Counted from the stretch's first letter, positions 1 to 63,648 are shown. The stretch is 64,000 bases of DNA from Trichosphaerium sp. ATCC 40318 (GCA_038496445.1 JALMLS010000186.1:102882-166881); one strand, 5' to 3'. The notes: generated by a model from the letters alone, not told the origin. A program made the numbers and translations.

Positions 1-717
1 GCATACATAAAGTGGCCTTTGTTGTCGAAACAAACAGCAACAACTACAAGGTTTGATGTAGAGATGAACAAACATGGAAAATGGACAAAGTATACAGTTG
101 CTGATACAGCCAAGCGAGTATTTCAAGAGAATTGGATGAATGGTAAACTTCATGGAGCATGTAGAAAGTGGTATGATAGTAGTCAACTTGATAGCCAGTT
201 CTACTATGCAAATGGTAAACTTGAAGGAGATTTCAAGGGATGGTACAAGAACGGGCAACTAGGTGAGCACTGTAAATATGTTAATGGTAAGAGAGAAGGA
301 CAGTATAATGTTTGGCTTCCTAGCGGAGAATTGAGAGAGAAGCATCACTATGTAAAAGGAAAACTTGATGGTGAGTCAAAACATTGGTACAAGAATGGAC
401 AAATTAGGAAACAGCTTTTTTTTATCAATGGCATACAAGAAGGAGAGTACAAATGTTGGCACAAAAATGGTCATTTGATGTTTAAATTTAACCTTGTCAA
501 TGGCGTTTATGAAGGACAACAGCTTTTGTGGCATTCACGAAATCAGCTTTCTGAAGAATATTATTGTGTTGCTGGTAAAAAACATGGAGTGTACAAGATC
601 TGGTATAAAAATGGACAACTAAAATTAGAAGGTAAGTACAACAATAACAAACTAGAAGAAGCAAAAAGATGGTATGAAGACGGAAAACCATTATTGTACA
701 AGTTTGTTGGGGTATAG
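1..717 (+). CDS. F-box-like + MORN-variant (MORN_2/YwqK-like) repeat protein, 5' partial
   Basis: Frame is open from base 1 (AYIKWPLLSKQTATTTRFDVEMNKHGKW), the same linker as the paralogues. About 8 repeats of GExKxWYxNGQLxxxxxYxNGKxE follow. Confidence 0.85.
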   Translation, partial: AYIKWPLLSKQTATTTRFDVEMNKHGKWTKYTVADTAKRVFQENWMNGKLHGACRKWYDSSQLDSQFYYANGKLEGDFKGWYKNGQLGEHCKYVNGKREGQYNVWLPSGELREKHHYVKGKLDGESKHWYKNGQIRKQLFFINGIQEGEYKCWHKNGHLMFKFNLVNGVYEGQQLLWHSRNQLSEEYYCVAGKKHGVYKIWYKNGQLKLEGKYNNNKLEEAKRWYEDGKPLLYKFVGV

Positions 718-906
718 CGAGGGTCTGCCCATTTTATTTATACACAGTAATTAGTATTGATGTATTTATGAACCAAAATGCAGATAAAATTAGTACAGTG
801 TTGAGCGTTCTTCCAAACAGTTGAATACGTGAATATTGTTTTTCTAAAGTTGTATTGACAACTACAGATATACAAGTAATGGAACAAGTATAACCCAACT
901 TGTCTA

Positions 907-1728
907 TTAGTATTTGACGGTACATCCTTTCTCTTTCAATGCCATAATACCAGCTGTTGATAGTGAGTTACAACCAAACAATAGTGCTCTATGTACACCC
1001 TCCAGTGCCTTCAAACCCTGCTCTGTTATATTTGTGTACGACAAGTTGACTTCATGTGCTCCTGCTAACGCTTTCAAACCTTCATCTGTTACTTCTGTAT
1101 TTGACAATTTAATTGCATGTACACCTGCTAACACCTTTATACCTTCATCTGTAATCGATTTGCACGTATTTAAGCTGATAGTATGTACACCAGCCAACGC
1201 CTTCAAACCTTCATCTGTCACGTTTGTACATGCTAAATCAATCTCATGTACACCTGCCAACGACTTTATACCTTCATCTGTTATTGATCCGCAGTTAGAC
1301 AACCCGATTTTATGTATACCAGCCAAGGCCTTCAAGCCTTCATCTGTCACCTCTGTGCACCCTAAATCGATCTCATGTACACCTGCCAACGCCTTTATAC
1401 CGTCATCTGTAATCAATTCACACATGGCTACGTTGATAGTATGTACACCTGCTAACATCTTCATATGGTTATCATCTAGTGTACTATGACACTGAACACG
1501 AATTGGTGTATTTAGGAGTAACGGGCTGCCGGAAAGCATCTTCACTTTACTTACGCTGCGAATATCAATAGCAGTATATCCTACGTGGCTGTGAACGATA
1601 TCTCGCAATAAGCGGCATGTTTGGGCTGAACGGAGCGTATAACTCCCTTGTTTGAGAATACGCGCTATTATTTCGACTGGGAGTGCTAAGAGCTCACTTG
1701 CGGCCTTTTCAGTGTATCCTTGGCTCAT
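907..1728 (-). CDS. F-box + leucine-rich repeat protein (single exon)
   Basis: LLALPVEIIARIL...SAQTCRLLRDIV F-box, then alternating 21/22-aa LAGVHxIxLxx(C)xxxTDEGxKA repeats. Confidence 0.9.
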   Translation of the reverse strand: MSQGYTEKAASELLALPVEIIARILKQGSYTLRSAQTCRLLRDIVHSHVGYTAIDIRSVSKVKMLSGSPLLLNTPIRVQCHSTLDDNHMKMLAGVHTINVAMCELITDDGIKALAGVHEIDLGCTEVTDEGLKALAGIHKIGLSNCGSITDEGIKSLAGVHEIDLACTNVTDEGLKALAGVHTISLNTCKSITDEGIKVLAGVHAIKLSNTEVTDEGLKALAGAHEVNLSYTNITEQGLKALEGVHRALLFGCNSLSTAGIMALKEKGCTVKY

Positions 1729-1905
1729 TTTGTTAGAATTAACGTGTAAGACGCGGCCTAGTTGTGAGATACGTGTTATTGAAAGTTAACATAAGTACTA
1801 CTTTCAAAGAATACAATGTGTTTCGTAATGTAGACTTTCGACGAGAATGAGTCTACGGTAAATACACTACAACTACTCATAAAGAGCTATCTAGCATGTA
1901 GTATC

Positions 1906-2088
1906 TCAACAAAAACTGAGATCAATAGTGTGAACTCCAGAAAGAGCTTTTATCCCTTCATCTGTAACCATAGTGTGAGAAATATCAATGGTATGAACAC
2001 CAGCAAGTGATTTTACACCTTCATCTGTAATGTGCTTACACCGTTCAAGATTGATGGAATGAACACCAGCAAGGGTTTTTAAACATGC
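1906..2088 (-). pseudogene. LRR gene fragment (about 3 repeats, no F-box or start codon)
   Basis: Minus strand reads LKTLAGVHSINLERCKHITDEGVKSLAGVHTIDISHTMVTDEGIKALSGVHTIDLSFC*, bounded by stops on both sides. Confidence 0.85.
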
Positions 2089-4923: not shown

Positions 4924-5302
4924 TAATGCAATCAAACGTTGTGAATAAATCCAGTAAGTACAGCGGAAATTAACAATCCACAAAATAAGTTTAGCCTATT
5001 GAACTTAAGTGACAAGGTAAGCATTTGGTGTTGGCTGGTATCCATACAATTCAGTTACTGTACTGTCACAGTATAACAGATGAAGGTACAATTGGTTGGT
5101 GTAAATCCAGAGTAAATTAGTGTCGAAACCCACGAGCATTTAATGACAAAAGTAGTACAACAAGTATTAGTGAAACGTGTGAAAGTTGAGTGTAAAATAC
5201 GAGAACAGGTTCATTGTTACACATCAACGGCGACAAATCTCATATCAGCTCAAACACCTCTGACCTTTGAAACAAAGCTATTTATTTTTTTTGTGTTTTT
5301 TT

Positions 5303-11280: not shown

Positions 11281-14200
11281 TTAATTGAACATTGCGCTAT
11301 ACTCCATAACAAGGATATCCTCTCCTTGGACTATCAATTTGCCTTTGGCCATAGCAGGCTCATCACCAAATGTAACAGTATAATCACCTCCTCTAATCCA
11401 CTCATTACCTTCTGAATCCACCAATGAAAGTGCTCTTGGTGGTACAGTAAACAACACCTAAAAGGCAGTTCATCAGTAAATATGCGCTTGTACACAAGCA
11501 AATTTTAGAAAAAAAATCAGTCGTTTGAACTGGCCCTTCTTTCACAAAAGAACGGAGAACCTTGTTTGGGAAGTGACTTTTTAAGTAAAAAAAAGGCTAA
11601 CCGTTTCGCTAGTGCCTGGTTTCAGCATGTGTACACGTTGGAAGCCAAATAGTTTCTTAATAGGAGCGTCTGTATGAATACTATATACAAATCCAAGAAC
11701 GCTTACATCTGAGATAACATGTCCAGTGTTCTTAACAGTTACTTCATAACCAACATTTGGTTGAGGATTTGAAAGAGATTTATGTCCGATTGCAAGATCC
11801 TCCGTAGACACTGATATCTGCGATTGTACAATGGTGTAGTTAAACGAAGTATAAGACAAACCAAAACCAAAAGACCACAAAGGCGTTCCAGTGTAGTAGC
11901 GATACGTTATACCACCTAGAGAGTGTAATTAACTTTGTTGTTTCTGGTATGTTTGTCAAAAGAAATACCATCATTTCTGAGGTTCATGTTCTCTTTGTCT
12001 CGTTTGATGAAATCGGCAGGATAGACTGTATTTGGTAGTCTCCCTGACGGACTAACATCTCCATATAGAATAGAGGCTATTGCTTCTCCTATAAAAATAA
12101 TTAAGCAATAAACTGTTGTGTATTTGCTGTAAACCAACTACTAGTTTTCCTTGGTCTTTAGTACCTCCGAATTCGCCTGGATAGAAAGCATCTACGATTC
12201 CAGGCACATTCTCCTTTGTCCATTCAATAGCAAGAGGGCCACCATGTATCAACACAACAATAGTAGGCGTCTAATAATACTGTTATTAAACAAAAAAGAA
12301 AGTTGTTCCAAAACACGTGACAACAGGAATACATCAAGAAAGTGTACCTTAGTTACATGAACAGCTTTGATTAAGTCAGTTTGAACACCAGTCAACTCTA
12401 ATATTTCCCTATCATGACTTTCTCCTTCACTTGCAGCTCCACATCCCTTTCCAGGATGCAATCCAACAAATACAACTGCGTAATCTGCTTCTTTCGCAAT
12501 CTTTGTAGCTGCAGCGAACCCTGAAGTATCGTTGGAAATCAAGTCACAACCAGCTGCATATCCTGCTATTTTTACACCTTTTCTCTTCAAAGCTAGGTAA
12601 GGAGAGTTGTTGTATACGAGTTCATTAGATCCAATATAAGTAGACAACATCTCAATCGTTACATTGAAATGAGGTCCAAGGATGGCAATAGATTTATCCT
12701 TAGAAAGTGGCAATATGTTATCCTCATTCTTTAATAGGACTATACCCTGAAGAGCACCATCAAGGGCAAGTTGCCGATGTTCATGAGTGTCAACAACTTC
12801 AGGTCCAAGTTTTTGGTAACTGACATTCTACAAAGGAGAAAGTGAGTACAAAAGAGGCGCTAGGGCTATAGAAGTACCTCATCCATCTCACCAAGCATAA
12901 AAAGATACTTCCATGATGATATAAACGCATTGTCTACGTCTTTCTCTTTCAACACACCATTCTTGACTGCATCTGGTATGTATGATGAAAAGTACTGACC
13001 ACAGTTCATGTCACATCCAGCGTTGATAGCAACGCGTACTTGTTGGTCTGTAGATCCGTTAAAGTTCTTTTTTATATACTCTGTAAAGGCTCCATCAGTA
13101 ATAGCCAAGCAGTCAGAGACAACAAATCCGTCAAATTGCCATTGCTTTCTTGCTACGTTATTTATGAATTCATTGTTTCCGCAACTTGGAATGCCGTTCA
13201 CTGCGTTGTATGCACACATGATTGAACCTACATGAGCAGCTTCTACAGCTGATCTGAAAGCTGGCCAGTAGAATTCTACTTGATCTTTGAGGTTTACAAT
13301 AGCATTAAAGCTTTGTCGGACTACCTTACATGCAAAATTAGAAACCACATTGTAAGAACAAGTTGATAAAAATATGGGAAAAAACTAGGAATAGCACAAA
13401 GACAGTCATTTGATTATCAAACATTGATTATGATTGTTTATAAGTTTCTAATGCTTTCAAGTGGCTTAACATTGATGAAACATTTGAATGTGTAACAAGA
13501 AGCGAAAATAAAACACATAAATATTAGATTGCGGCTATTACATACCTCACCATTGCCTTCTATGTCATAGTCTGAAAAGTGTTTTGCTGTTGAAATTGCT
13601 TTGTAGAATCTTGGATCATCTCCCTCTTGTACACCTCTTGAGTAATGTTGTACATATTCAGATGTAAGAAAAGGATCTTCGCCAGGGACTTCTTGGCCTA
13701 TATTGTATTTCACTGAGCTACAAGAAAAAGAAAGATAAATCGACAGCACTTGCCTCGTCCCCACCGCGGATCCCTGAATAGATTGATATCTGGTGCCCAG
13801 AAAACGAGCCCTGCTATACCTTGTTTATTCAAGCCACGAGCTTCAATGGCGATAGCAGAGCCAACAGCACTCCACAGCCTAGGTGTAATTTTAAAAAAAA
13901 TGAAAGAAAAGAAGCTACATTTACGTTCTGTTGAACGAAGCACCCATCAGTAACCCATGAACAAATGACGTTGGGCACCCTGTATTCCCATTATATTTCT
14001 CTCCGCAAATAGTATGAACGCCATGTAGAGCTTCTTGGAACTTCAGTCGTGGCACCTGCAGCTTAAGATTAAAAGAGTTCAGAAGCAGTTTCAAATGTAC
14101 AGCAAGTCTTGGAATACCAAGATTATTGTCTATCAACAAATGCGCTTTTTCTGCGAGCGTTAAACGAGATACAAGGTCGGTAACTCTTTCTTCAGCGCCA

Positions 14201-17496: not shown

Positions 17497-20400
17497 CTAG
17501 TGTTGTGGAGGTGTAGGTAAAGGTTTGGTAATTTTAGGCTTTGGTGGAGGTTCAGGTCTTGCACCACGGTTGACAGGAGGAGGACCAGCATGAGCAGCAG
17601 CTGGAGGTGCAGGAGCAGGACGAGCAGCGGCTGGAGGCGCAGGAGCAGCTCTAGCATGTACAGCTGGAGAAGGTGCATGTGTTGTAGTATGGGATGTTGA
17701 CCCACCGTAAGTACTCTTACTTGCTGCAGGAGCAAAACAGAACTTCTTTGACTTCCATAAGAAGTAGCAAACAACACAAACAACAACAATAATAAAAACG
17801 ATCAGAAAGATGACGCCTATAGCAGCGCCTGCAGCACTACTACCTCCAGAGTTTGATGATAAATCTTCTCTAAGCAGACATCTACTTTCTGCAGCAGCTA
17901 AAGAATAAAAGGGTCAGTAAAGAGTTAAGCATGGTCGAAAAAAACTTTGATTATCTTTTCCTTGTCGGACTACTTACCAGCTTGTTCAATCTTTGTACGA
18001 AGTAACAATGATACACGATTACTATTAGTACCGTGCTTTCCTTCTGCACCAAAAGTGATATCAATGTTGGAACAGTAGGACATAATAGTTCCTCCATCAG
18101 CGGGTTGACTCTCAGCACCACTGAAACAAGCAGATCCTCTTGATGTCTCTCCTGATTGACATCCATCAACATGAACAGATGCAAAACCTAATTAGACTGT
18201 TATACTCCATTATACTCTTACATATACAACTAGAATTGATGCAGCAACAAACTGTTGAATGCACTATAAAATTGAACGTGACAGATTAAAAAAAACGGGA
18301 GATATTTTCCTCTTTGAGCAAAAAAATCCATGTCGTACCATCTATGGCCATTGCTGGTGTATTATAACAATGAGTATGTGAACTACCAACTGTATGACCA
18401 AGTTCATGTGCTACAGTAACAACAAATCCCTTAAATCTTGATGTCTTTTGCTCAGGAGTGTACATTCTATTAACAGATCCGCCTATAAAAAAAAAAGAAA
18501 AACATCAATAACTTGCCACAATAATATTTAATTTGGTAATGCAGAAAAAAAGTATTTTTTTCTACCGTTATCAATTCACGTACTTCTCGTTCCACACAAA
18601 ACATCTACATTTGCAAGACCAGCAACAAAGCTATTTGTACCACCACCAATATTACGTGTAGTAACAAGCGCATAAGCATCAATCTCATAGTCACTGAGGA
18701 GACTACGACGTGTAGGACTAAATAAAAATTAGCTCAATATCGAAAAAAAGAAGAAAAATCCAACGCACTCATTCACACTGTAGTAAGCTACAATTTCATT
18801 CAAAAGAGCAGATGCAGCTCCATCTCCAGAAGCACCGCTCCACGGATCAGCAGCTAAAAAGAAATAAGCATTACATCCAACAAAGTCCAAATCTTTCTTT
18901 AAAACGCACATGAAGAATATAGAAATAAGTTTTGAATCTTTACTTTAGTGTTCAAGTCTGAGAGGTACACTGATGATACTTCAGCAATACTTTCTTCAAT
19001 ATTAGTCCTTAACAAATCCAAGTCATCACCTATTATCAAATATTTAATGGTTTATCCCAATAATACAAAGCGAAACAAAAAAAATCAGTGTTGTGTTTGT
19101 TGACATACCATAAGCTGTGAATGTTTCAAAATCAGATTCAACAGCAAGCTAGGAGGTAAAACTTAGTAAGATAACAAATAAATCGTAATAAAAGACAATA
19201 TAAGTAACACGACATGCTAATATTGTTCAAAGTTAAAACCAAAACCACTTTCTTGTTTTGAAAAAAACATTCAGGAAATAAAGATTGCGTTCAACGTACA
19301 CGCATTGTATACGTAATACCATCATTCGTTGGTTTCAATCCAGTCTGTTCAACACCACGTTTTGACATTGAAGCAATAACACCTCCAACCTTGCCATCAC
19401 GAAAATGGAAATCATGATCGTGATCATGTGTCATATTATGATCGTGTCCACTACATTTACCAACATGATCATGTTCAGGTTTTGGTTCGAGTTTCTCTAA
19501 ATGTACTGTTTCTTCATTAACATGTACGTCATAATGACCTTCGCCATGCTAAAATAAAGCGATTAGTACATACATGAAAAAAGTTGATAATTCTTTCTTA
19601 GTTTTTCGCTGTAATTGTTGCAATAATCACTTTTTTCAATTTGCCACACGTGTATACTGCGTTTTAGTACTATCAAAAAAACGAGTTTTAAATGCAATCT
19701 TTAAAAACGATACAATCATAAAAAATAGCCAAAACGCCACTAAACTGCATCCTTTTTATGTGCACAGAGTCAATTTCAGCAAAAAAAAAAGATCCAAAGT
19801 CCACCAAAACTGCAAAAACAACGAAAAACGAAAAACGTTTCTTTCTCGTTTTGACGCATTTTCATCTCAATGTACGTTGATTAAAAGTCCGTGATAATTA
19901 TTGTGTTTTTCGAAAAAACCTTTTGTACCTTTCCAAACGCCCACGCTGACACTTCGCCTTTGTGATCGAAATGAAACCTCACGTGAACATCACCAAGCTT
20001 TGCGCTAAAGTGGTGGGACTCTAAAACAACGATTGTGAGACTTTTTGACAATATCCGAAAGTTGCGGGGTTATCCCGTTATTTAAGTTTTGTTAGACATC
20101 TACCGTACGATTCTGTGCGTGAAGAAGGATTTTTCACGAATAGTAGAATGCGAGACGGGGATTTTTGGGTTGAAAAATTGAAAGTACCTGGAATCTCCAT
20201 TTGATGCTTGTTGTTAATGAATATCTTTGCTCCATTTGCTTTGGGTTATGTTTAGACCATATTTGTGTTTCAGTTTATCAATACGCACCATACGGGCTTT
20301 CTCTCTTTTTCATATGTAATACAGTGCTCTCTCCATTCCTTTTTGATTTGGTTAGAAGCTTTTTTAGTAAACTTCGTGATTTAAACGTTTAATGTCAATG

Positions 20401-20614
20401 GTTGATGATATACACGCACTCTTGTTGTGGTAGATGCACTTTAAATGCTTCTGACTCTCGTATTTCTCTGTGGTTAGCGTGAAAGTGCGCCCAAGGTATA
20501 GAGGCTGTATAAAGGCACTTAGGACGGTTTGATAATAAAATATTGCGTACTAGCGCTAATTGTTACGGCACAACCAAACAGAAGGCCCAACAGAAGCAGT
20601 GCGTTGTAGTGCAT
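17497..20614 (-). CDS. Metzincin (reprolysin/M12B-like) metalloprotease A, type-I membrane with Pro-rich tail
   Basis: Signal peptide MHYNALLLLGLL, VAHELGHTVGSSH zinc motif, TIMSY Met-turn, TM helix, then ...RPEPPPKPKITKPLPTPPQH*. Confidence 0.85.
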
Positions 20615-28136: not shown

Positions 28137-28426
28137 TTAACCGAGAAAACTTACCGTACTTCTTCTCTGGCCTTCGCATCCCGGCTTTTTCTGCCATAGT
28201 ATCTATAATATAGTGTTAAACTATCTGTTAAGCATATTCTCGGTACGTTTCTCATGTGTCGCTTATTTCTTTTTACCCGATGGTTTTCGAAATTTTTTTT
28301 TGGCTTACTTGTGACCACATGGTCAATTTCCGTTTGTCCTTTCGCAAGTTGAAACACTTGAGTTCATACAGAGTTTATACTTTATCTATAGAGTCCCGTG
28401 TAGCTTATTAATAGTTTTATAGTACA

Positions 28427-29568
28427 ATGGAGTCTTTTAAACGGTCGTTAATGTCGAGAGCCGAGTGTACGTTTTACGTTAGTGTTTTTTTACAGCATTT
28501 TTTTTTTATTGAATCACGTGTTGATTTATTTACATACTGTTCCCAGTTACGCTTCATACTGGCTCAATAATTTTGCGTCTACCTCGGGAAATACAAAAAA
28601 AGATAAGCTCAACGAACGAAGAGACGTTTACTAAATGGTACGTAAAAGTGTACATAGAGCCCAAAAGAAGAATAAAATTTTGTCGCTAAAAAACAACAAC
28701 CGAAAAAAAAAAACCCCGTCAACCGCCAAAACTTGCGAACTCAAGTTTCGCCTTTTCAGCGATAACTGACAACTTTATTTCTAGGCACGTGCTATCTAAA
28801 CTAGCAGCAACAATGACCCACTATAATAATAAACTTGAGAGGAATGGTATATGGCTAAAGTGGCATAGTAACGGTCAACTACGTGTTAGATGTTTTATTC
28901 AACATGGCGTAAAAGAAGGACGAAGAACACATTGGTACGAAAACGGTCAGATAAAGTCTCTATGTTTCTTAAAACACGGTCTACCTCATGGAGAAGTAAG
29001 AGAGTGGTATGATAATGGACAAATAAGTTCGTTATGTACTATGAATGAAGGAAAAAGAGAGGGAGAATATAAAACATTTTTTATGAATGGTCAATTGGAG
29101 TCTTTTGGTTTTTTTAAAGAAGATAAAGAGAATGGAGAGTTTAAAGAGTTTAGAGAGAACGGACAGATATTAATGCATTGTTATATGATAGATGGAAGAC
29201 AAGAGGGTGAGTATAGAGAGTGGCATCATAATGGGCAGCTCTCTATGAGATGTTTTATGAAAAACGGTATGGAAAACGGTGAATATAAAGAGTGGTATGA
29301 TAACGGTCAGTTACATATGCACTGGGTTATGAAAGACGGTAAAGCCGAAGGAGAGTATAAAGAATGGCATGATAACGGTAGATTAAAGTCGTTATGTGTA
29401 TTTAAAGGAGGTGACGAAGACGGAGAAATACAAGAATGGCATAGGAATGGACAGTTAAAGATGAGATGTTTCATGAAGGAAGGTATTGAGAATGGCGCTC
29501 ATAAGGAGTGGAATGATAAAGGATGTGTAACAATACATGCTTATATGAGGCACGGTGTATGTGTTTAA
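28427..29568 (+). CDS. F-box-like + MORN repeat protein (3 exons, Met-rich repeats)
   Basis: Introns 28467-28546 and 28638-28784 give MESFKRSLMSRAEFTLHTGSIILRLPREIQKKISSTNEETFTKWHVLSKLAATMTHY, restoring the family F-box. Confidence 0.85.
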
Positions 29569-30195: not shown

Positions 30196-31164
30196 TCACT
30201 TGTTAAAGCATATGCGTGCACCATCCAAAGACTTTAACCCTTCGCGTGTTACATTTGTATAGGATAGATCAATCACATGCACACCAACTAATGCTTTCAC
30301 ACCATGATCTGTTATTGACTTGCAACCAAATAAGTGGATAGTGTGTACTCCAGTCAATGCTATCAGGCCTTCATCTGTCACATTTGTTTTGGATAGATCA
30401 ATCGTGTGCACACCAGCTAATGCCTTTACACCGTGATCTGTTATTGACTTGCAACCATATAAGTGGATAGAGTGCACTCCAGTTAAAGCTTTTAATCCTT
30501 CATCTGTTACTTTTGTTACTGATAAATAAATAACATGTACACCAGCTAATGTCTTCACACCTTCGTCTGTTACATTTGTATAGGATAGATCAATCACATG
30601 CGCACCAGCTAAAGCCTTCACACCGTTGTCCGTTATTGCTTTACAAAACCGTAAGTGGATGGTGTGTACACCAGCCAATGCCTTCACACCTTCGCCTGTT
30701 ATTGATTTACAATACCATAAGTGGATGGTATGTACTCCAGACAATGCCTTCAAACCTTCATCTGTTACAGCTGTTTCATATAAGCCGATAGTGTGTACAC
30801 CAGCCAATGCCTTCACACCTTCATCTGTTATTGAATGGCAAAATTGAAGATTGAGGGTATGAACACCTGCTAGCAATTGCAAGTGGCTGTCAGTTAGATT
30901 ATGAAATTGGCGAAAAGAAATAGCTGAGTTCTTCAATAAAGGACTCCCAGATAGAATTTTCACTTCAGTTTCACTAGTTACATTGATTTCACCATATCCA
31001 ACATGGTTGTGAACGATACCTCGTAATAAGCGGCATGTTTGGGCCGAACGGAGTGTATAACTCCCTTGTGTAAGAATATGAACTATTACTTCAACTGGGA
31101 GAGAGGTTAGGTAGCAGTAGTGAGCAGCATTTGTTTTTTCACATCCTGTTGCTGATTTGTCCAT
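30196..31164 (-). CDS. F-box + LRR protein (single exon, about 11 repeats)
   Basis: LTSLPVEVIVHIL...SAQTCRLLRGIV followed by LAGVH repeats. Confidence 0.9.
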   Translation of the reverse strand: MDKSATGCEKTNAAHYCYLTSLPVEVIVHILTQGSYTLRSAQTCRLLRGIVHNHVGYGEINVTSETEVKILSGSPLLKNSAISFRQFHNLTDSHLQLLAGVHTLNLQFCHSITDEGVKALAGVHTIGLYETAVTDEGLKALSGVHTIHLWYCKSITGEGVKALAGVHTIHLRFCKAITDNGVKALAGAHVIDLSYTNVTDEGVKTLAGVHVIYLSVTKVTDEGLKALTGVHSIHLYGCKSITDHGVKALAGVHTIDLSKTNVTDEGLIALTGVHTIHLFGCKSITDHGVKALVGVHVIDLSYTNVTREGLKSLDGARICFNK

Positions 31165-35207: not shown

Positions 35208-36247
35208 ATGACATCTAAAACTACATTAAGAAATAGCGTACGGTATACCGACGTCATACTACGACTAACACAAAAAATTAGTTACAATCCGAAAAATGTC
35301 TTGTATTGTGTCTTCCGTTGGAACTACATGGTGAAATCATTGATTTAAGCTTTGAAGTTTATAAAAAGTGGTCGCTGTTATCAAAATACATGGCAACAAC
35401 AACAAGGTTTGACAACGAGTTAAATAAACACGGGAAATGGATAAAAAAACGTGAAACCAAAAAGCCAAATATTTTATGTCACGTGTTTTTCAAAAACGGT
35501 TTACGTCATGGAGATTCAAAGAGTTGGTTTAAAAACGGCCAAGTACTTTCTCAAAAATTTTTTGTGAATGGTAAACTGCAAGGGGAGGTCAAGAGGTTCT
35601 ATCCTAATGGTACAGTGCGGGTACATTGCAATTACATAGATGGCAAACGAGATGGGCAGCTTAAGAAGTACCATAAGACTGGTCAATTATCTGAACAAAG
35701 TAATTATGCAAATGGCGCACGTGATGGAGAGTACAAAGAGTGGTTTACTGATGGTCAAATACATAGAAAAGTCTTTTATGTCAATGGTAAAAGAGAAGGA
35801 GAGCAGAAACGTTGGTATGAAAATGGCCACTTGAGGGAAAGTTTCAATTTCATAAAGGGCAAACTAGACGGAGAGAATAAGCAGTTCTATAAGAATGATC
35901 AAATAAGAACTGAACGTAATTATACCAAAGGAAAACATGACGGGGAGGCCAAGTCCTGGCATGGTAATGGGCAATTACAGTCTCAAAGAATGTGGGTTAA
36001 TGGTAAATCTCATGGTGCATATCAGACATGGCACAGCAATGGGCAATTGAAAAAGCAGTGCAATTATGTGAATGGTTACCGAGAAGGAGAAGACAGGAAG
36101 TGGCATGAAAATGGACAAACAAAGGAAATAGTTTATTTTAAGAATGGGAAATACAATGGCACTGTAAAGACATATGACTCAGAAGGTAACCTGACTTCAC
36201 AGTGTATATATGTTAATGATAAAAGAATGGAAGAAAACACAAACTGA
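35208..36247 (+). CDS. F-box-like + MORN repeat protein (2 exons)
   Basis: ATG at 35208, 44-nt intron 35238-35281 (GTACGG...ACTAAC...TTAG), then LCLPLELHGEIIDLSFEVYKKWSLLSK and about 11 repeats. Confidence 0.88.
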
Positions 36248-36752: not shown

Positions 36753-38183
36753 TCACTTTGCTATCGTATCTAAGCGCAATTCACCATTTGTATCCCATTC
36801 TTTAAACACCCCTTTTCTTTTATCATTGACATAGTTGCAAAGCTGACATAATTGACCATTTTCATGCCAACTCTTGTACTCTCCCTCCAACTTATCATCA
36901 ACATAATAACAATGTGTATTTAGTTGTCCATTAGAGTACCACTGTTTAAACTCTCCATCTGGTTTACCATTCACACAATTATACTTCTCACCGAGCTGAC
37001 CGTTTTCGTGCCATTCTTTGTATTCTCCTTCTCGTTTGTTGTCAACATAGCTACATACCCTCCACTGATTACCGTTCTCGTGCCACTCCTCACACACACC
37101 TTGAATACGATTATCAACATAGACACACCGTGTCTCTAACTGCCCATTACTAAACCAATACTTGTGCTCTCCTTCTAATACATTACTACTGTAGGTACAG
37201 TGTTCTAATATTTGACCATTTTTATTCGGATCAAAACGCTTGTAATCTCCATCTAAACGCTCACGTTTATAACTTCCTTTCTCGTTCAAAAAACTATTTG
37301 GATGCCATTTTGTATACTCCCCTTCCTTAACACCTCTGACATATTTACAAGTCTCTTTTGGTAAACCACTGTCATACCATGTTTTGCACTGTCCGTGGCG
37401 AAAACCACCAACAAAATTAGATTCTTCAAGCAAATGACCATGATTCTTTGAATACCTTTTATACTTGCCTTCTTTCTTACCACGAACATAGTCATACTCT
37501 TCATATAATTCACCACTTACAGACCATGATTTGTACTCTCCTTCTTCTAAATCATCAACAAAGGTACACTTCTCATGTAATTGTCCATCTACATACCAAC
37601 GCTTAAACTCTCCTTCAAGTTTATCTTTAACATAATGATTTTCAACATGTAGCTGTCCATTGTAATACCATGTCTGATATACTCCTTCTAGCTTACCACT
37701 GACATAATGGCACTTGATTTCTTCTTTTTTCCAAGACCTGAACTCTCCCTCAAGCTCACCATTGACGTAATTGCTTTTGATGAGCAATTCGCCATCGGAT
37801 GCCCAACTCTTATGCTCTCCTTCTTCCTTGCCTTCCTTAAAATGCATTTGCTTCCGTAATTGACCGTTTTTGTACCATTTCTTGAACTCTCCGTGGAGTT
37901 TACCGTTTTTCCAATGAGCTTTCCTTAAGAGCACTGATTTGGACTTCTTTATCCATTTGCCGTGTTTTTGAAGCTCGTAGTTGAACCTAGTCGTAATTGC
38001 AGTGTATTTAGATAGCATTGACCATTTCTTGTACACTTCGAAGTCAAAATCGGCTAAATCGAGTTGTATCTCTAGCGGTAGGCGTAGTAGGTGGCAAAAA
38101 TCAGCTTCTGACTCATTCATCTAAAGCGTATATAAGCTTTCTGCAACAGTACAAGTAAAGAGTACTACTTGTCGTTTCGTCAT
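36753..38183 (-). CDS. F-box-like + MORN repeat protein (about 16 repeats, probable short 5' exon)
   Basis: LLRLPLEIQLDLADFDFEVYKKWSMLSK. The ORF ATG at 38120 is preceded by CTTTAG and an upstream mini-exon MTKRQ(V) starting at 38183. Confidence 0.88.
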
Positions 38184-38689
38184 CAACAAGCAGCTCGAAA
38201 GTTGCAATGCGCCAACTCGAGCAGAATAGCTTTTTGACGACTTTGTTTGACTCTTCGGCGTTTTTTGATTGTATTATTTAGTTACAGGCTCACGTGAACC
38301 ACAACTCCACCATGTCTCTGTTAAGTATTCTTTGATAGCTAGCGTAAAAGCAAGAGGTTTGTTCAACGCTTGGGCTTTTTATTGCCCAAAAATTCATTAG
38401 CCTTGGAAGTGTTAACATTACAAAAGATGTCGTCCTTGTCATTACATGCCACGTGAATAGTTCCCAACAACTCAATAATATCTCAGCTGGTAGGTATTGC
38501 AGGAGTTTACAATAAGTGGTAGCGCATAGAATGATACCACGTGATTAACGATGATAAAGACCTTGGTAAATAAGTGGTTTACAAGAAATAGTCAATTTAA
38601 GCTAAAATTGTGCGCAAAGAATATATTCATTGGCTAACAATCGTTTAAGCATTTAACTCAAGATATGGTAACAAGAGGCTTTGTATTTG

Positions 38690-44197: not shown

Positions 44198-44545
44198 AGC
44201 AACTGGGATTGTTTGCATTTCTGGCATTTTTCAAATTTCACGCCACGTAGCGAAGGTTGGTTTCTTGTCCAAGCAAAGCTATGGGCCTGACCAAAAGCGA
44301 ACCGAGCACTCTACTTGCTCGCATTCGTTGTCCCACACTCGAAAAATTTTCGAACTAATGAGGACAATTACAGGACACCGTAAGGAGGCTTGGTTACCTT
44401 GATGCTGGCAATATACTTATAATAAATTAACTTGAAGAGAAGCGATACACGCTGCCTGTTATCAACTTAAGTGTGAAGAATTTTATGTAACAATACATTT
44501 GCTTAGGTTGGCTTCTGTTTTTTTGTCTGTTGCAAGTAAGCAATA

Positions 44546-45368
44546 TTAATGACGAGTATAGTTTACTAGCTCACCATTGACATACAAACCTTCTGCACTT
44601 AAAATACCATTGTCATACCATAGCTTGGTCTCTCCTTGTAAAATACCATTGATATAAAACCTTGTTTCATTAAGCTGTCCGTTTCTGTGGTAGCTGTTGA
44701 ATACTCCCTCCAAACCATCAATATTGTACTTACATTCTAAATACAGTTGTCCATTATCAAACCAATGCTTAAACTCTCCTTCCTCCTTCCCATTAACATA
44801 GTGACGTTGCTGGTAAAGATACCCATTCTTATACCATAAGCTTGATACTCCATCTTCTTTGTCATTTACATAGTGCCTTTGTTCCTCGATTTTACCACTT
44901 CTAAACCACCTTGTATACTCTCCTTGTTCCTTACCATTAACATAATGATGTCGGTCTCTGAGTTTGCCAGACTTCTTGTAGTATGATGTATACTCTCCAT
45001 GCAATAGACCGTTGTTGAAATAACATTGTATTATTATGTCATATGTGATGTATTCAGCATAATCTCCTCCTTTCTTACCATGCCTCTCGTACAACTTTAC
45101 TCCTGTGTGGTTTTTTTCTATTCTTTTCTGTATTACCCATTTACCGTGTTTATTCAATTCCTCATTGAACCTTGTCGTCTTTGCTGCGTATATTGATAGC
45201 ATAGGCCATATTCTATATACTTCAGGGTCTGTATCGATAATATCGAGTTGTATCTCGTACGGAAGGTTAAATAGCCGATTAGAGTCCAATTCGATGGTAT
45301 TGCTCTGTTTATAAGGCGGAGTTACTAGTTTTTATGTTAGAGTTGCGTACGTTGCTGTTTGTTGCCAT
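44546..45368 (-). CDS. F-box-like + MORN repeat protein (2 exons)
   Basis: MATNSN, then a 46-nt intron (45305-45350), then SNTIELDSNRLFNLPYEIQLDIIDTDPEVYRIWPMLS and about 7 repeats. Confidence 0.88.
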
Positions 45369-45606: not shown

Positions 45607-46329
45607 ATGAGTTTGTTGCGGCTACCTACAGAGATATTGGCGTACATCTTGCGTCAAACGACCAAATCGCGATTTGCAGCTTGTCAAACATGTCAGTCCC
45701 TCGCTTCTATTGTTCACGATATTATTGGATACGACGCTATTAAAATTAACACGATAGCTCAAGCAAAAGCAGCCGCAAAACATCGTGGTATTCTGAACAA
45801 CACCAAAATCTCATTTGGAATGAAACGTGATGAACTTGATGACAATGTTATCAAACTATTTGCTTCTGTTCATACTATTGACCTTGCGTACACTCTAGTG
45901 ACTGATGAAGGGATCAAAGCGCTCGCAGGTGTTCATACCATTAACCTCAGGCAGTGTCATGGTTTTACCGACGAAGGTCTCAAAGAACTCAAAGGAGTAC
46001 ATACCATCAATCTTAAGCAAACATTAGTCACAGATGAAGGTGTCAAAGCGCTTGCTGGTGTTCATACTATTCACCTCAGTCAAACTTCAGTAACAGATGA
46101 AGGAGTCATACCTCTCGCTGGCGTTCATACCATTTACCTTGATAGGACTAAAGTAACTGATAAAGGTGTAATGGCGCTTGCTGGTGTTCACAGTATTTTC
46201 GTTGCCAGCACCAAAGTAAGTAATAGAGGCATACGCGCACTCAAAGGTGCATACTATATTAACGCAATTTCATGTCGTGTTACTAGAGAAGGGGCTAGCC
46301 GCTTAAAGGGGACTTCTGTGTTTGTATGA
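45607..46329 (+). CDS. F-box + LRR protein (single exon)
   Basis: LLRLPTEILAYIL...ACQTCQSLASIV followed by LAGVHTI repeats. Confidence 0.9.
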   Translation: MSLLRLPTEILAYILRQTTKSRFAACQTCQSLASIVHDIIGYDAIKINTIAQAKAAAKHRGILNNTKISFGMKRDELDDNVIKLFASVHTIDLAYTLVTDEGIKALAGVHTINLRQCHGFTDEGLKELKGVHTINLKQTLVTDEGVKALAGVHTIHLSQTSVTDEGVIPLAGVHTIYLDRTKVTDKGVMALAGVHSIFVASTKVSNRGIRALKGAYYINAISCRVTREGASRLKGTSVFV

Positions 46330-46389
46330 AAAATAACATAAAGATAGTCAGTAAAACGTGATTTAGTAGCTACGCTCTTGTATTTTTTT

Positions 46390-46720
46390 TTTCATCAATA
46401 AAACTACATTTGTTCAGTCAGTTTTCCATTTCTGTGCCAGCGTTTAAAATCATCATTCTGGTTGTTATCAATATAGTTCGCATGTATGCTTAGTGTCCAT
46501 TGTCATGCCATGTCTTGTATTCACCAAAAATAACTTCAAAGTTGTCCACTCTTGTTCCATTCTTCTTGCCATTAGCAGATGTCATTTGTGCCTGTAGATG
46601 GCAATTTTCATGCCACTTTTTTCCTTCACCGTGAAGTTAACCATTAATGTAGTAGGAATGAAACTGAAGCTGGCCGTCATCATACCACTTTTTTTGTTGC
46701 CATTTCTCCTTTCTAGTTCC
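46390..46720 (-). pseudogene. Decayed MORN-repeat gene
   Basis: KKWYDDGQLQFHSYYING*LHGEGKKWHEN... GEYKTWHDNG [frameshift] ...FKRWHRNGKL. Confidence 0.85.
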
Positions 46721-51852: not shown

Positions 51853-51995
51853 GGTTCGTAGTGTGCGGTGATGTGGCAACGAGCGTACTCTGCGGGTTAG
51901 TGAAAATAACATTGACCTACAGCTGTTTTTGAGAGTTTTTTTCACACACCATTTTCTACTCTTGTGCGACCAAAAACCATATTAGCGCCTACCAA

Positions 51996-54887
51996 ATGAT
52001 ACGTGTACTGTTTTGTATCCTACTGACACTCCCGTTGTTGGTGTTTGTACGTAACAAAGTGTATTTTTACTTTAACACATCAAAGACCGACTTTGGTACG
52101 CTCAGGAAGATGAAACTAAAAGAATTAGACGATGCAGCTGACGGTTGGTTACAAATGCTACCAAAGCATCACAAACTAATGCCCACGCTTAGGAGAGTTA
52201 CGCTTTGAAAGCTGGGTACAAAAACATGGTGTGGGAATTCACGGAGTCTCTTTTCCACGTTATCCTCAGCCACGAGTCGTAGCCACACAGCACCTTGATG
52301 TACTCACACAGCATTTTAATTAAAACAATTTTTAAAAGAAGCTGACAAGGCAACAGGCACTAACTAAGATCCTCACCGTACCTTTAAGTGCGACAATAAC
52401 AGAGCTAACAGCAAGAAATCATGCCGTATTGGGACCTATACTTGCCGAGTACGAAAACAGTATTCAAGGTGCGCATTCGTTCTAAAACACAAACGTACAG
52501 CTGCACAAGCATTGTTTGCCAGCAGCTACCCCTTTTTAAAAACAAAGCAAAAAAGTACTTAGCGAAGAATGGTTTCGATCCATTGACCTTTGGGTTATGG
52601 GCCCAACACGCTCCCTGCTGCGCCACTTCGCTTTGAATGTGATAATTGGAACGAAAAAAATGTAGTCTTTCAAAATAGAAAGTTTGACCTTCGTGGACCT
52701 TAAACTCACTCTGTATTAGGACGTTCAGCACTTGCAGTTCTTTTGATGTATGAAAAGAATAACTACGATAATTCAGAATGGAAATTATACCTTGATATGT
52801 TCCCTAAAGAGCTTAACACGCCAATGTTTTGGAAAAAGTCTCAAAGAGATGAAATAACTGGAACTTGGCTACTAGATAGAGTAAACGCAGATTTAGGTAT
52901 GTTTAGTACTACCACGTGACATTACAGCTAAATTTGGTTCTTGTAACTTCACTATTCTTATAATTTTCCTGCTTTTCTATCTAACTTCATAATAGATGCT
53001 ATCATCGCTGACTATGACAGAGTATTCACAAAATCTTTGACTAAGGTACCTCGCATTTTAAAACTAAATATCGAACTCAATACAAGAGATGTCCTGCCCG
53101 TTTTTCTCAACGTAGAACTTAGGGTTACCCGAATATATTTCCTTCAAAAGAGTATTCGCTGTCTTCTTACTTGTGGGCTTGGGGTATAATATTTGATTAT
53201 ACAGTACGTATTGAGGATGAAACAAGTGATTACAGCGGTTTGATGCCAGTATCTCACTTATTTGAGCATCACTCAAAACATCAAGTGCGTGAACTTTTTT
53301 ATCGAACAAAAAAAAACTATGTCAAAAAACAACTTAAAAGAAAGTTGTTCTTGTCAGCTCAATGGCGACCAGAGCAATGTCATTCATACCAGTATGATTT
53401 AAACTTTTTTTTGGTATATTATCTATTGCACTAGTACTCAGTACCCGAGTCAGCTTCAAGCTTAAGCAATTATTAAACCAAAATTTTAATGCTTGTTTTG
53501 TTTACTTACTCTTTTTTAGACACTCTTTAGCATTGAAGGTGATAATATAATCATCAAAGTAGGTGATACATATGACGAAAATGATAAGGTACTTTGAAGT
53601 ATATTCTATATATCGCACTGTTATAATCACGCGCAGACATATTCGTGAAATTTTTCTTAACTTTTTTTCGTTCCTACTAGGTTTTCAGAAGTTATTACAC
53701 TGATGCACCAAATACCGATTTATTAAGAAAGCATGGAATTGTTCAAAAAGATAATGAAAATCATATTTTCCCTCTTAATCTTAATTTTAAAGATAATGAA
53801 CCTTACTTGAATACAAAGAAAAAATGGATGGCACTTCATGATATACCAATGTACGAACCTCTTAAACTTTTTACCTCTTTGTTTTTTTTTCCACGTGGTT
53901 TACATGCTCCGCAGAAATAACTAGTGTCCTTGTGTGGCGCTATTTATAAATCGTTTTCATCTCTTCAAATTGCGTATTTTGATACCATGATAACTAAAGT
54001 ACTCTCAAACAACTTTTGTGAGTACTTTTTTCAAAACAAGTTTTTTTTTGACAACATCTTTAACACTTCATAACTACCATAACGTTACAAATTGTCTGGT
54101 TTTCTATTGTTATTGAGTTATCTTATAATTTATGTATACGCTCTTTAAACCTATTTCCTTTACATTGTGTTTTATGATTGTTACTAACTCTCTTTTTTTT
54201 CCAAGACCAAACTACCCTTACAGTGAGCGTGAATACTTTCTTTCATCAAAAGGAGCATCTGGGAGTGTACCTGCTTTTCTAAGAGTTAAGCACTATAAGA
54301 TAAGACCAAATGATGTTGGATTTCCAGAAAAGCTACCTAACCCGCATGAAGACCAAACTGGTATTTTGAATCAACACTTACTCTTTTCTTCTTTTTTTCT
54401 TACAGTTTTTTTTTTTGCAGAGGACAATAAAGATGTTGAACGTCAAGTTGTATTTGAACTAGCTGATATTATGAAAAAAAATATGGCCGCATATCCAACA
54501 ACATTAGAGGTACAAACATGATATTAGCATACAAAAAAAACAAAAAAAAAACGTCTTTGTGTTGATTTCGTTCGTTTCTCACTCAAGAGACTGCTTTATC
54601 TGTATTGTTTTTTAATGTGCTTACATACTGTAGGAAGATTTAGAATTATTAAAGCGAGATGACTTACCTGAACGTCAATATTTAGCTGTAGTTGCTAGAC
54701 TTTCTGAAAAGGTAAAAATGGTTTTTTCATCGAATTTTTATATTTTATCACCATTCGCTAAGCCGAGCTAAAATTAATATAGCTTGCTTTGAAATCTGCT
54801 CAAAAAGAAGTAAATGTCCGTAAAGTAAAAGAAGGCGAACAATTTTCGTTCTTTGCAGACGATGATGATGAAAAAGTAGAAATGTAA
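51996..54887 (+). CDS. SET-domain (Rubisco-LSMT/SETD3-like) protein with signal peptide and divergent catalytic motifs
   Basis: SEWKLYLDMFPKELNTPMFW, LWAWG, LMPVSHLFEH, PNTDLLRKHGIV and YPTTLEEDLELL. Ends DDDDEKVEM*. Confidence 0.75.
52560..52632 (-). tRNA. tRNA-iMet: Initiator tRNA-Met (CAT)
   Basis: AGCGAAG acceptor stem with A1-U72, TTGGG-CCCATAA-CCCAA anticodon arm with 3 G-C pairs, eukaryotic initiator T-loop GATCGAAA and a downstream T6 terminator. Confidence 0.97.
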
Positions 54888-60447: not shown

Positions 60448-60782
60448 TCCTTTACCATAGTCCGTTTGACAGGTAACGCCTTTTCTTTGTATTTCAGCCA
60501 AATGAACAAACAGAGCCAAGAGAGAAAGTGGGGAGTAACGTTAGGTGTTTTTGTGGTGCAAATGTGCGTGTGAGTAATGCGGAGGTGATTTTGCTTGACT
60601 CCCGTTTCTGAGAGTACGAGCGTGTTATTTCGAGTTGAGCGTTACGGAATCGTCTTTTATAGAGAATTACGTGTGACAGAGTCAATAACAAGATCAACAA
60701 AAGCAACAGAAAAATAAAAAGGTAAAGTCAGTGTTAGAACTAATTTGCTGAATTTATTCTATAGCGTTACAACTCTGACAGA

Positions 60783-62695
60783 ATGCTTGGAACTTCAATG
60801 GAAATATCAGATAACTCTGGGCGTGTATTAGACAATGATTTACTTGATAGATACGTTACATATTGTTTAAATAACCTTAACTGACTGTACGTACGTTATT
60901 ATTCTTGAACGTTGGCGAGGAGGAGCCAAGCGCACCTACAACATTTGGAGGACCACCACCACGCAATACGCCTTCATCTGCAATGAGTAATTTCATTTAT
61001 TGCGTCGATTGAATAACTTTATCGCTTAGAGCGCAAAAGAGGGCGTCCAGAAGAAAGCTCATCAATATCTGAAACAAAACAAGCTTGGGAGGTATGTTGT
61101 ACAATCTGACGGTTATAATACAATACAACTTTAATTAAAATAGACTATTATAGATGGCAGCAGTATCAGGAAAAGAATTCTGGAAGGATTTAAAGAAAAA
61201 GGCTCACGGGAAGAAGAAAAAACCAACAACTTCAGTACGCTTACTTAAATTCTCTTATTATGGCTTCCTTCGCCTAAATTACATCATTTTAATTTAATTA
61301 CACCGCTTCGTACAAACACATGTTTTAGGACTCCGTACCGCTTGATATAATTGTGGATGGATTAACAAAATATGACTTACAAGAGTATGCTAAAGGGCTA
61401 AAAACACTTTTACAACAAGGTAAGATATTGTGACCTTTTATAGAGTATCTTTTTAACCTGGTACATATATTACCAATCGTGTTATTTATAAATCAAGAAT
61501 AACGTCTCCGCCCACAATAATTTTTTTTTGGACAATTCTACAAAATCTCGAAAAGTCCAAAACGTACTTGTTGTACTATCGCTTTGCGTTTTTTTCGTTT
61601 AGATAAACGATTTGTTTTGTTTTCTTGCTAATAAAACTGTTTTTAAGCTACAAATCTAACAGGAAGTGAGCAAATCGTTCCAAGGGCAAGCTGGGATATA
61701 TTTTTGATGACTTTTGGATCAGATTTACGTGTAGCATGTCACAGGTTGGGTTATTTTGTTGCAAAAGGGTACGTTGTTGTTTTGATTAAGTGTGGAGGCA
61801 GCTAAGGCAGTTTTATGTCGTTTAATGTTTTCCTTTTTTCTGTTTTGTTTTTGGCGTCTTCTTTGGTGTTTTGACTTATATCCCTATGCCTTTATTCGTG
61901 CATACAGTTAAAAGTACTGCAGAATGCTGTTGTTCTTGTTTGTTTTTTTTCTTCTTTTTTCTTTTTTTTTCGTTTGCTGTACTTCTTATTCTTCTCTTGC
62001 TTTAGTTGGTTCTTTGGTATTGTTGAGAAGACAGAGATTGAAACTTTAATGGAAATGGAGGAACCTGGTACATTTCTTCTTCGTTTGAGCACGTCAAATT
62101 CAGGTATGAAAGAAAGAAGAGCTTATGTTGTTTATGTTGTGTGAATCTTCTTTATTTTTATTTTGTTTTTCACTTTTGTACACGGTTTTTGACTTATTTT
62201 GTTTGAAGGTTTTGCTATTTCACGAGTGAATAGTGAAGGTAAAATAAGGCATCATCACAATATAAGCTTTGTTGGAGACTCTGGTTATGAAATAAAATGG
62301 TACGTTACACATGAATTTTTTTTTGGAAAATCCTTTAGTACAACCATTCCGATCGGATTCTTGTTCTTCGCTCACATAAAATACCGGTTTTGTCTGTAGA
62401 GTAAAAACTAAGGTATTTATGTGGTCTGAGAGAACAAGAATTAGAACGATTTGAATGATTCTAACTGAGTAGTTTTATAAAGGAAATCCCGACAAAAAGA
62501 AAAATAAAAGATTCGCTTTGTTCAAATTTATTTTTTGGTGCTGTCTTGTACTCACGTGTTTTTTTTTTCAGGGCCGATAATGGTAATCATACTTATCGTG
62601 ATATGGATGCATTAATTAGTTCCTTAAAACATAAACTTAAATGGGCTGTAAAAGGATCACGGTTCATGCAATATCATCATGAATTATCTGATTAA
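60783..62695 (+). CDS. SH2-domain protein, multi-exon
   Basis: WFFGIVEKTEIETLM...PGTFLLRLSTSNSGFAISRV...IRHHHNI. Confidence 0.85.
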
Positions 62696-63084
62696 AATTT
62701 ATCACCTCACGCCAAAATAGAATAGTGTGATGGTTTCTTGTAAAAATAAAGACTACTTCAGAAGTAGTTAGTTGTTGTCGAATATTAAACTTAGCATGGT
62801 TGTGAAGCTGTGAAAGTGGTTTATGTTGCTTTCAGAGCCCGTGACAAGGTATTAGGTAAAAGATGTTTTTTTTTTAACCCTAAGATAAACTGGTGTTGTT
62901 TCTTACTTCTCAATACGCATGCTGCAAGTTCGTCTTCTTTCAACCTCTTGCCTAGTTGTTGAAGGCATAACAAAAAACAGATATTGTGTGGTCCAATCCA
63001 AGAAGAAATCCCACGTGATTACTTTAATTGACTTCTTAAGCTAGAACCCGAGTAACAACAAACAACCAAAGTAATAAGTGTAAA

Positions 63085-63648
63085 ATGGACCTTATCACAT
63101 TGCCAGTTGAAATAATCGTACATATTCTTCTCCGAGGAAGGTTTACGCTACGTTCAGCTCAAACATGCCACTTTCTACATGATATCGTCCACAAGCATGT
63201 AGGATATGGCAGTATTGAAGTATCAAGCATAGATGAATTAAAAATACTGTCTGGCAGTATGCTACTACAGAATACAGCTATTTCTTTATTTAAATTGAAA
63301 CGTGTAATAAACGACAGTCACTTGCGTTTACTTACAGGTGTACACACCATCAAGTTGATTTCCTGTAAACTGATAACAGACAATGGTATCTCGGCATTGG
63401 CTGGTGTGCATACAATAAACTTGTCATTTACAAATGTTACAGATGAAGGTTTGAAGGCTTTGGCTGGTGTACATACAATTAAGTTATCAGGTACTAAGAT
63501 AACAGATGAAGGTTTGAAGGTTTTAGTTGGTGTACATTGTATCAGATTAAGGCATTGCAAATTCATAACAATTGCTGGTATCAAGCTATTATCTGGAGTC
63601 CATACAGTTTACTGGGGTAAAGGAAGGGAACCACTAGCATTGACATAG
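63085..63648 (+). CDS. F-box + LRR protein (single exon, about 5 repeats)
   Basis: LITLPVEIIVHIL...SAQTCHFLHDIV followed by LAGVHTI repeats. Confidence 0.88.
   Translation: MDLITLPVEIIVHILLRGRFTLRSAQTCHFLHDIVHKHVGYGSIEVSSIDELKILSGSMLLQNTAISLFKLKRVINDSHLRLLTGVHTIKLISCKLITDNGISALAGVHTINLSFTNVTDEGLKALAGVHTIKLSGTKITDEGLKVLVGVHCIRLRHCKFITIAGIKLLSGVHTVYWGKGREPLALT

Follow-up and report, generated by a model that had tools for sequence, protein, structure and literature searches.

The 64,000-nucleotide stretch of Trichosphaerium sp. ATCC 40318 DNA analysed here (JALMLS010000186.1:102882-166881, below referred to as the window; GC content 34–41%) contains five genes for proteins that join an F-box to MORN_2 repeats and four genes for proteins that join an F-box to leucine-rich repeats (LRRs), as well as one MORN gene that has decayed and two LRR fragments. 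These are probably ordinary nuclear genes of the amoeba that belong to two large lineage-expanded families of substrate receptors of SCF (Skp1-Cul1-F-box) ubiquitin ligases, the pairing of MORN and LRR genes being a by-product. The genes were located by listing the open reading frames (ORFs) of the window and by six-frame search with the family proteins. All nine intact genes reported by an earlier inspection of the sequence alone (the sequence-only reading) are present where it placed them, in the islands and orientations that it described; decayed copies exist as well, although three were found instead of the two counted. The members of the two families, designated M (F-box/MORN_2) and L (F-box/LRR), and their remnants are as follows.

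1..717, plus strand: M1, F-box/MORN_2 gene with the F-box end (5') cut by the window edge, linker and repeats remaining (MORN_2 E-value 2.4e-18)
907..1728, minus strand: L1, F-box/LRR gene, single exon, 273 residues (LRR_6 E-value 3.9e-23; F-box-like 18.6 bits)
1909..2082, minus strand: decayed LRR fragment of ~58 residues with 3 repeats and no F-box, ending in a stop (six-frame search)
5028..5087, plus strand: one-repeat LRR remnant (six-frame search)
28427..29568, plus strand: M2, F-box/MORN_2 gene, 304 residues (spliced contigs; MORN_2 E-value 3e-35)
30196..31164, minus strand: L2, F-box/LRR gene, 322 residues, ten repeats of 21–22 residues, convergent with M2 (Pfam, structural model, Foldseek, contig)
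35208..36247, plus strand: M3, F-box/MORN_2 gene, 331 residues after removal of a predicted 44-nt intron (MORN_2 E-value 3.8e-43)
36753..38120, minus strand: M4, F-box/MORN_2 gene, 455 residues, clean ATG, convergent with M3 (Pfam MORN_2; three-helix N-terminal model)
44546..45289, minus strand: M5, F-box/MORN_2 open frame, 247 residues (Pfam; protein identical to record P0238)
45607..46329, plus strand: L3, F-box/LRR gene, 240 residues (PF00646 21.6 bits, cutoff 20.5)
46385..46711, minus strand: pseudo-MORN, a degenerate MORN_2 array interrupted by stops and frameshifts (six-frame search)
63085..63648, plus strand: L4, short F-box/LRR gene, 187 residues, four repeats (Pfam)

Across the window genes the Pfam E-values range from 1e-17 to 1e-43 for MORN_2 and from 1e-11 to 1e-33 for LRR_6. 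M1 and L1 converge with a gap of 190 bp, and the pairs M2/L2 and M3/M4 are convergent as well. M5 and L3 stand head-to-head with 318 bp between their frames, L3 in turn converges with the pseudo-MORN across a gap of 56 bp, and L4 is alone at the edge of the window, with no MORN gene in the 352 bases left before the window end. The convergent MORN/LRR arrangement is thereby present three times, counting L3 with the pseudo-MORN, and the head-to-head arrangement once. Identity between paralogues in the window is 48–63% in the LRR family, with L3 as the most divergent copy (48–49% to the other three), and 32–46% in the MORN family. The LRR fragment at 1909–2082 is 66–69% identical to repeats of L1–L4.

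The LRR family has an F-box as defined by N-terminal ~40–50 residues with three helices and an LPxE start. Its N-termini score 17–23 bits with the F-box-like profile of Pfam (cutoff 24.3), and that of L3 passes the threshold of PF00646. The AlphaFold2 model of L2 (mean predicted local distance difference test score, pLDDT, of 89) contains the F-box helices 24–32, 34–43 and 45–55, and the best solved matches found for it by Foldseek are the FBXL2-SKP1 and FBXL17-SKP1 complexes (TM-score 0.73–0.76 at ~21% identity). The LRR units are 21–22 residues long, a Cys type alternating with a Thr type. Position 5, on the concave face, is a His in all 24 repeats; variation is confined to positions 6, 8, 10 and 11 and to the residue after the C/T, and most other positions are strongly conserved. 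Like FBXL2, FBXL17 and Skp2, these proteins consist of an N-terminal F-box followed by a curved LRR solenoid with the C/T-x-x-(I/V)-T-D-x-G pattern. They differ from the FBXL proteins in the length of the repeats (21–22 residues instead of ~26), in the alternation of Cys and Thr types, in the β-strand face with its invariant His and nearly invariant Thr, in F-boxes that score at or below the Pfam thresholds, and in the huge expansion of the family in one amoeba.

The repeats of the MORN family are recognized without difficulty: MORN_2 (PF07661) scores 60–141 bits against a cutoff of 29.6, and 31 tandem repeats of 24 residues and of the G-x3-G-x4-W-x3-G type were parsed, in which Gly is invariant at positions 1 and 5 and the Gly/Trp/Asn-Gly skeleton is kept. 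The conserved linker in front of them (TAxTTRFxxxLxKHGKW) appears, to judge from its motif, to be a half-repeat that caps the MORN array. The N-terminus of these proteins is another matter. Pfam F-box profiles match it in none of the window genes and in 0 of 48 family members at E ≤1. Comparison by hhalign with the F-box of the LRR family gave a probability of 39%, confined to the LPxEI helix, and comparisons made with the first, shallow alignment of the MORN N-termini, against the F-box of the LRR family and against that of protein P0001 (F-box plus MORN_2), were weak. Profile searches of PDB sequences with the N-terminal alignments of both families returned chance matches only.

A deeper alignment for modelling was obtained by searching a profile of the MORN N-terminus against 1.84 billion representatives of 50%-identity clusters, where the domain was found in 50 clusters. 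Of ten representatives examined, nine are transcripts from MMETSP or JGI, all probably from one transcriptome; one family member belongs to MMETSP0405, and its taxid, 498012, is that of Trichosphaerium sp. ATCC 40318 itself. The first 62 residues of M4 gave no match in a set of 5.8 billion proteins, short relatives falling outside the length window of that search. In the AlphaFold2 model of the N-terminal 65 residues of M4 (pLDDT 85) the helices 16–25, 27–33 and 38–44 follow directly after the LP motif. Foldseek found 22 matches of this model in the PDB; every one is an F-box protein, in most cases a chain of an Skp1 complex, and among them are Cdc4, Fbw7, Fbx4, D3/MAX2 and FBXL5 (root-mean-square deviation 1.6–1.8 Å over 34–37 residues). 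The E-values are weak (0.9–10). An independent all-against-representatives comparison with VIA-align returned F-box proteins in 20 of 24 matches, with Z up to 3.5. The scores of the individual fold matches are weak, which is no surprise in so small a domain, and the MORN N-terminus is read as an F-box because its fold matches almost exclusively F-box proteins. It is the modelled structure, and not the sequence, in which the F-box of this family can be recognized, and this near-exclusive matching persuades us that the N-terminus is a divergent F-box.

Since the F-box of the MORN family is cryptic to Pfam, F-box counts are too low for this genome and perhaps also for giant viruses.

Among the ten representatives looked up, L003:1958-2167 alone is not a transcript but lies on a genomic contig, of eukaryotic metagenome origin and with 47% GC; it is a single exon that encodes the MORN-family F-box and linker of the amoeba type. 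It adjoins exon fragments of MCM, Rpb6 and Exo70.

As both families join an F-box to repeats, they are plausible SCF substrate receptors, a role that rests in part on structural modelling. The SCF-receptor assignment of the sequence-only reading is borne out as far as the F-box-plus-repeat architecture goes, by Pfam and the AlphaFold2 model in the LRR family and by structure only in the MORN family. The first family would be of the FBXL type, its F-box leading into a solenoid built of unusually short LRRs; the second would combine a divergent, Pfam-invisible F-box and a conserved capping linker with a MORN_2 array. In both, the F-box would dock on Skp1-Cul1-Rbx1 and the repeat array would bind a substrate, of whatever kind, which would then be ubiquitinated; Skp1 binding and ubiquitination are what we infer from the architecture.

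Transcripts and introns point to residence of the genes in the host. Assembled contigs of public sequencing runs were compared with the 6-kb region 28201–34200, their RNA nature being deduced from the spliced contigs. The exons of M2 in these contigs are one that ends at 28241, followed by 28422–28466, 28547–28636 and 28784–29623; the coding exons are 28427–28466, 28547–28636 and 28784–29568, and the exon ending at 28241 belongs to the 5' untranslated region (UTR). All three introns are of the GT..AG type, two of them (28467–28546 and 28637–28783) in the coding region and the third in the 5'UTR. Spliced M2 was seen in three runs (X1, X2 and X5) from at least two studies, with zero mismatches in two of the runs. 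These contigs prove the start at 28427 that had been proposed from the sequence, and the frame includes the N-terminal motif. The proposed start of M3 at 35208 is likewise consistent with a predicted 44-nt GT..AG intron (35238–35281) with a CTAAC branch site, removal of which would put the ATG at 35208 in frame with the main coding part.

Run X1 also yielded a contig that covers L2. The protein of M5 is identical to that of a 1,010-nt JGI transcript (L002), and the M5 mRNA spans at least 44361–45351. No in-frame AUG is present upstream of Met30 in the M5 transcript, and in-frame stops precede the F-box part; the F-box part may not be AUG-translated because there is no in-frame AUG before Met30. 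Surviving copies are expressed, as the contigs of M2 and L2 and the transcript of M5 demonstrate.

One low-depth X1 contig exhibits a 45-nt in-frame skip in L2 (30558–30602), bounded by GT..AG on the gene strand. As an intron it was rejected, given that the repeat register would break and that the contig has mismatches; the skip could represent an alternative intron of very small size, or the contig could derive from a paralogue's transcript.

The relation of these genes to giant viruses has been described before. The Trichosphaerium sp. draft genome (GC 37.69%, mean intron 75 nt) was reported to contain 1,568 virus-matching gene models, termed giant-virus-derived, mostly Mimiviridae-like; ~40% of these models contain introns, the domains found most often in the whole set are F-box and MORN, and the best BLAST matches of many such models are in Indivirus, Harvfovirus, Hyperionvirus, Tupanvirus and Pacmanvirus (PMC10521059). 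That the F-box receptor families are related to giant-virus proteins is supported by the present analysis, and largely restates this published feature of the genome (PMC10521059). If the genes are ordinary SCF adaptors, the window illustrates the published large F-box/MORN complement shared with giant viruses.

The relatives of both scaffolds in giant viruses, as had been claimed from the sequence alone, were found. In a BFVD search L2 is 40% identical to a Tupanvirus F-box protein over 278 aligned columns (root-mean-square deviation 1.7 Å) and 36–45% identical to Catovirus and Hyperionvirus proteins, and the LRR family has 139 viral matches at E ≤0.001. The Mimiviridae-like F-box/LRR proteins (Tupanvirus, Catovirus, Hyperionvirus, Harvfovirus, Indivirus) have the same architecture and repeat type, with 36–45% identity over most of the protein, and are the basis on which the amoeba genes were called virus-derived (PMC10521059). 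An F-box protein with the same type of LRR is also encoded on a densely packed, virus-like contig of 25.7% GC (L001). For the MORN family, the ESM Atlas clusters nearest to residues 1–110 of M4 are F-box plus MORN_2 proteins labelled Nucleocytoviricota, and P0001 aligns with M3 over 97% of its length at 29% identity. These Nucleocytoviricota-labelled proteins share with the amoeba family the order of an N-terminal F-box and MORN_2 repeats, as do those of a further contig (L032). The difference lies in the F-box, which is canonical and Pfam-detectable in the former (32 bits), whereas the amoeba family has a divergent F-box and a linker of its own.

The contig L032:676-4488, from a public run and with 58% GC, carries three tandem genes for canonical F-box plus MORN_2 proteins, 30–80 bp apart. 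It has the appearance of giant-virus DNA or of DNA from another amoeba, and it shows that the same architecture has been amplified elsewhere.

The published interpretation, lateral acquisition from Mimiviridae-like giant viruses followed by amplification, or remnants of integrated viruses, draws on these matches: the BLAST results for many of the gene models (PMC10521059), the identities of L2 to Tupanvirus, Catovirus and Hyperionvirus proteins, the virus-like contig and the labels of the ESM Atlas clusters. Host-to-virus transfer fits the same similarities equally well, and the genes of the window, unlike the Mimiviridae-like ones, are surrounded by intron-rich genes on a eukaryotic chromosome and resemble the host in composition. 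Their GC content at third codon positions (0.30–0.37) is in or near the range of the neighbouring genes (0.20–0.36), M2 has its three spliceosomal introns, and no viral hallmark domain was detected among the 20 window ORFs of ≥121 residues that were scanned. Viral hallmarks, foreign composition and absence of introns, by which an integrated virus or a recent transfer would be recognized, are thus not the features of this locus. The amoeba MORN-type F-box with its linker was not found in IMG/VR viral contigs and is, among the 1.84 billion representatives, almost confined to Trichosphaerium transcripts. Nor did IMG/VR contigs contain the LRR signature in repeated form, its 28 pattern matches being single chance hits with no tblastn support. 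Exchange of the scaffolds with giant viruses is real, and an ancient transfer in either direction is possible; the copies in the window are long-resident host genes. The simple reading as recent viral imports is weakened because the genes have introns, a host-like composition and, as described below, purifying selection, and we regard the published interpretation as possible, though rather unlikely, for these genes.

The sequence-only reading had also described the families as a fast-evolving repertoire, and this did not hold where it could be measured. All intact paralogue pairs in the window have dS values from at least 1.1 to saturation. In comparisons among L1, L2 and L4, dN/dS is ~0.23–0.35 for the F-box part and ~0.22–0.28 for the LRR part, the repeats showing no elevation. 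In the MORN family, protein-level change is ~1.5x faster in the repeats than in the N-terminus, but dS is saturated. The strain or allele comparison covers M2 and M5. Against contigs of run X6, M2 has six differences, all synonymous, a ratio expected by chance with a probability of ~2.5e-5 given the 124 synonymous and 599 non-synonymous sites covered. Between M5 and transcript L002 there are 17 differences, of which 16 are in ~185 nt of 3'UTR, one is in the leader and none is in the 744-nt frame. The first 17 nt of L002 do not match the window. Among L1–L4, M4 and M5, an identical record in the protein collection exists for M5 only (P0238). Small as the samples are, they point to purifying selection on M2 and M5 and not to rapid diversification; purifying selection on the repeats, which had been named beforehand as an outcome that would speak against the proposed repertoire, is what these two genes show. 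Positive or diversifying selection on the binding surface was not seen in this small sample with dS near saturation.

A conserved F-box with variable exposed residues, as originally described, is broadly what the alignments show, but overall the LRR repeat region is as conserved as the F-box part. Turnover has left its signs in one pseudogene and two fragments and in repeat numbers that differ between copies, yet even so every intact pair is old. It seems that the families grew by old DNA-level duplications under birth-and-death evolution, which would leave unrelated genes interspersed with small clusters of two or three family members, with fragments and with pseudogenes.

These data bear on the proposal that the families are a diversifying, immunity-like SCF repertoire by which foreign proteins of viruses or bacteria are recognized and destroyed, the host being engaged in an arms race with giant viruses. 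It would account for the size of the families (at least 50 MORN-type clusters, and 139 mentions of "F-box" in a supplementary table of the genome paper, PMC10521059), for the concentration of LRR variability at a few positions, for the varying repeat number and the pseudogenes, and for the same scaffolds in giant viruses. F-box genes of C. elegans reportedly take part in responses to intracellular pathogens (PMC4063957, PMC8665587). The proposal does not account for the absence of fast evolution in M2 and M5, for LRRs with dN/dS no higher than that of the F-box part, for the age of all duplicates in the window or for the invariant His on the concave face. It is improbable in our view, and an immune role would be of wide interest if true.

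F-box expansions of nematodes and plants, and the F-box/BTB plus LRR expansions of amoeba-associated Chlamydiae, are likewise large, dispersed and tandem, and shaped by birth and death, and some of them have reportedly been proposed to act in immunity or host manipulation (PMC8665587, PMC3030570, PMC4209131). The partner domains in nematodes and plants are different ones, FTH/FBA and Kelch, and the chlamydial families are bacterial effectors, whereas the window genes are host genes, in which no positive selection was seen in the comparisons made here.

The neighbouring of MORN and LRR genes was evaluated by permuting the order of 6 MORN-type, 4 LRR-type and 12–30 other genes, in a window picked after the fact. 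At least four MORN–LRR adjacencies are obtained with p = 0.13 for 12 other genes, decreasing to 0.016 for 30; with ~20 others, as derived from the published density of 27,369 transcripts in 70.9 Mb (PMC10521059), p is ~0.04. The claim of adjacency beyond copy-number expectation is therefore left as a suggestive one, short of decisive. The further claim that the partners move or are regulated together found no support. L1 and L2 are 61% identical, and their partners M1 and M2, with 34%, are the most distant MORN pair, so that co-phylogeny of neighbours is absent. Similarity between islands stops at the coding sequence, with no shared flanking DNA, and no 7- or 8-mer upstream of the genes exceeds the random-region null. 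The islands were also considered as cargo of mobile elements; this was rejected, as there are no terminal repeats or shared flanks.

A convergent MORN/LRR pair that forms a co-regulated or cooperating two-gene module and duplicates as a unit would explain three convergent pairs and one head-to-head pair in 64 kb, at the permutation probabilities given above. Apart from the discordant identities and the lack of common flanks or upstream motifs, the evidence against it includes the island in which both genes are of the MORN type, L4 with no MORN neighbour in view, and the pseudo-MORN, which has decayed while its partner L3 is intact. In the available section of the published gene table, comprising 71 consecutive models, there are two adjacent YwqK-labelled (MORN-type) models with no LRR-type neighbour and two Harvfovirus-labelled models, and no MORN-labelled model is adjacent to a virus-labelled one (PMC10521059). 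The BLAST labels of that table, in the part available of Table S2 ("hypothetical protein Harvfovirus...", "No Blast Hit"), are too coarse to split the families (PMC10521059). Such a module is quite doubtful, and a convergent pair acting as an amoebal defence unit that spreads together and targets giant-virus proteins, with the viral homologues as decoys or counter-measures, is highly improbable, nothing testable here supporting a fast-evolving, paired immune system. Under the reading as ordinary, lineage-expanded receptor genes, the neighbouring would result from two abundant families accumulating in the same regions, together with some old block duplications, and the MORN–LRR pair would not be a functional two-gene system.

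Several observations nevertheless weigh against this preferred reading. The four MORN–LRR adjacencies exceed the permutation mean, and the convergent arrangement recurs three times in the window, which may indicate a functional or mechanistic link. The variable LRR residues cluster where other LRR receptors form their binding surfaces. The evidence for selection comes from two genes and few differences, and it is odd that the coding part of M5 lacks even a synonymous change beside a diverged 3'UTR. The latter pattern could be caused by very strong constraint, by gene conversion or by chimeric assembly of the transcript.

A block of ~170 nt with sharp edges is present in direct orientation at 31625–31790 and 38610–38776, the two copies being 96% identical. 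It lies upstream of the ATGs of two genes of the minus strand, at 461 nt from that of L2 and at 490 nt from that of M4. The block is covered by RNA contigs from three runs, whose continuation matches the copy near M4; one contig extends ~790 nt past the block, probably to ~39570. Since the contigs run on past it, the block belongs to a neighbouring transcript. It is not spanned by an ORF, and it was rejected as a known RNA gene, having no Rfam match. Possible identities are a dispersed fragment of young age and a small mobile element.

Between the islands the window contains ordinary genes, such as that of a glycoside hydrolase of family 3, whose intron-split exons for the N- and C-terminal domains are at 12249–13348 on the minus strand. 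A tRNA-Met (CAT) gene is located at 52560–52632, also on the minus strand. An unrelated gene region has undergone a tandem duplication of ~3.7 kb (17834–20509 and 21518–24317, with blocks 82–100% identical), which is far younger than every pair of F-box paralogues in the window.

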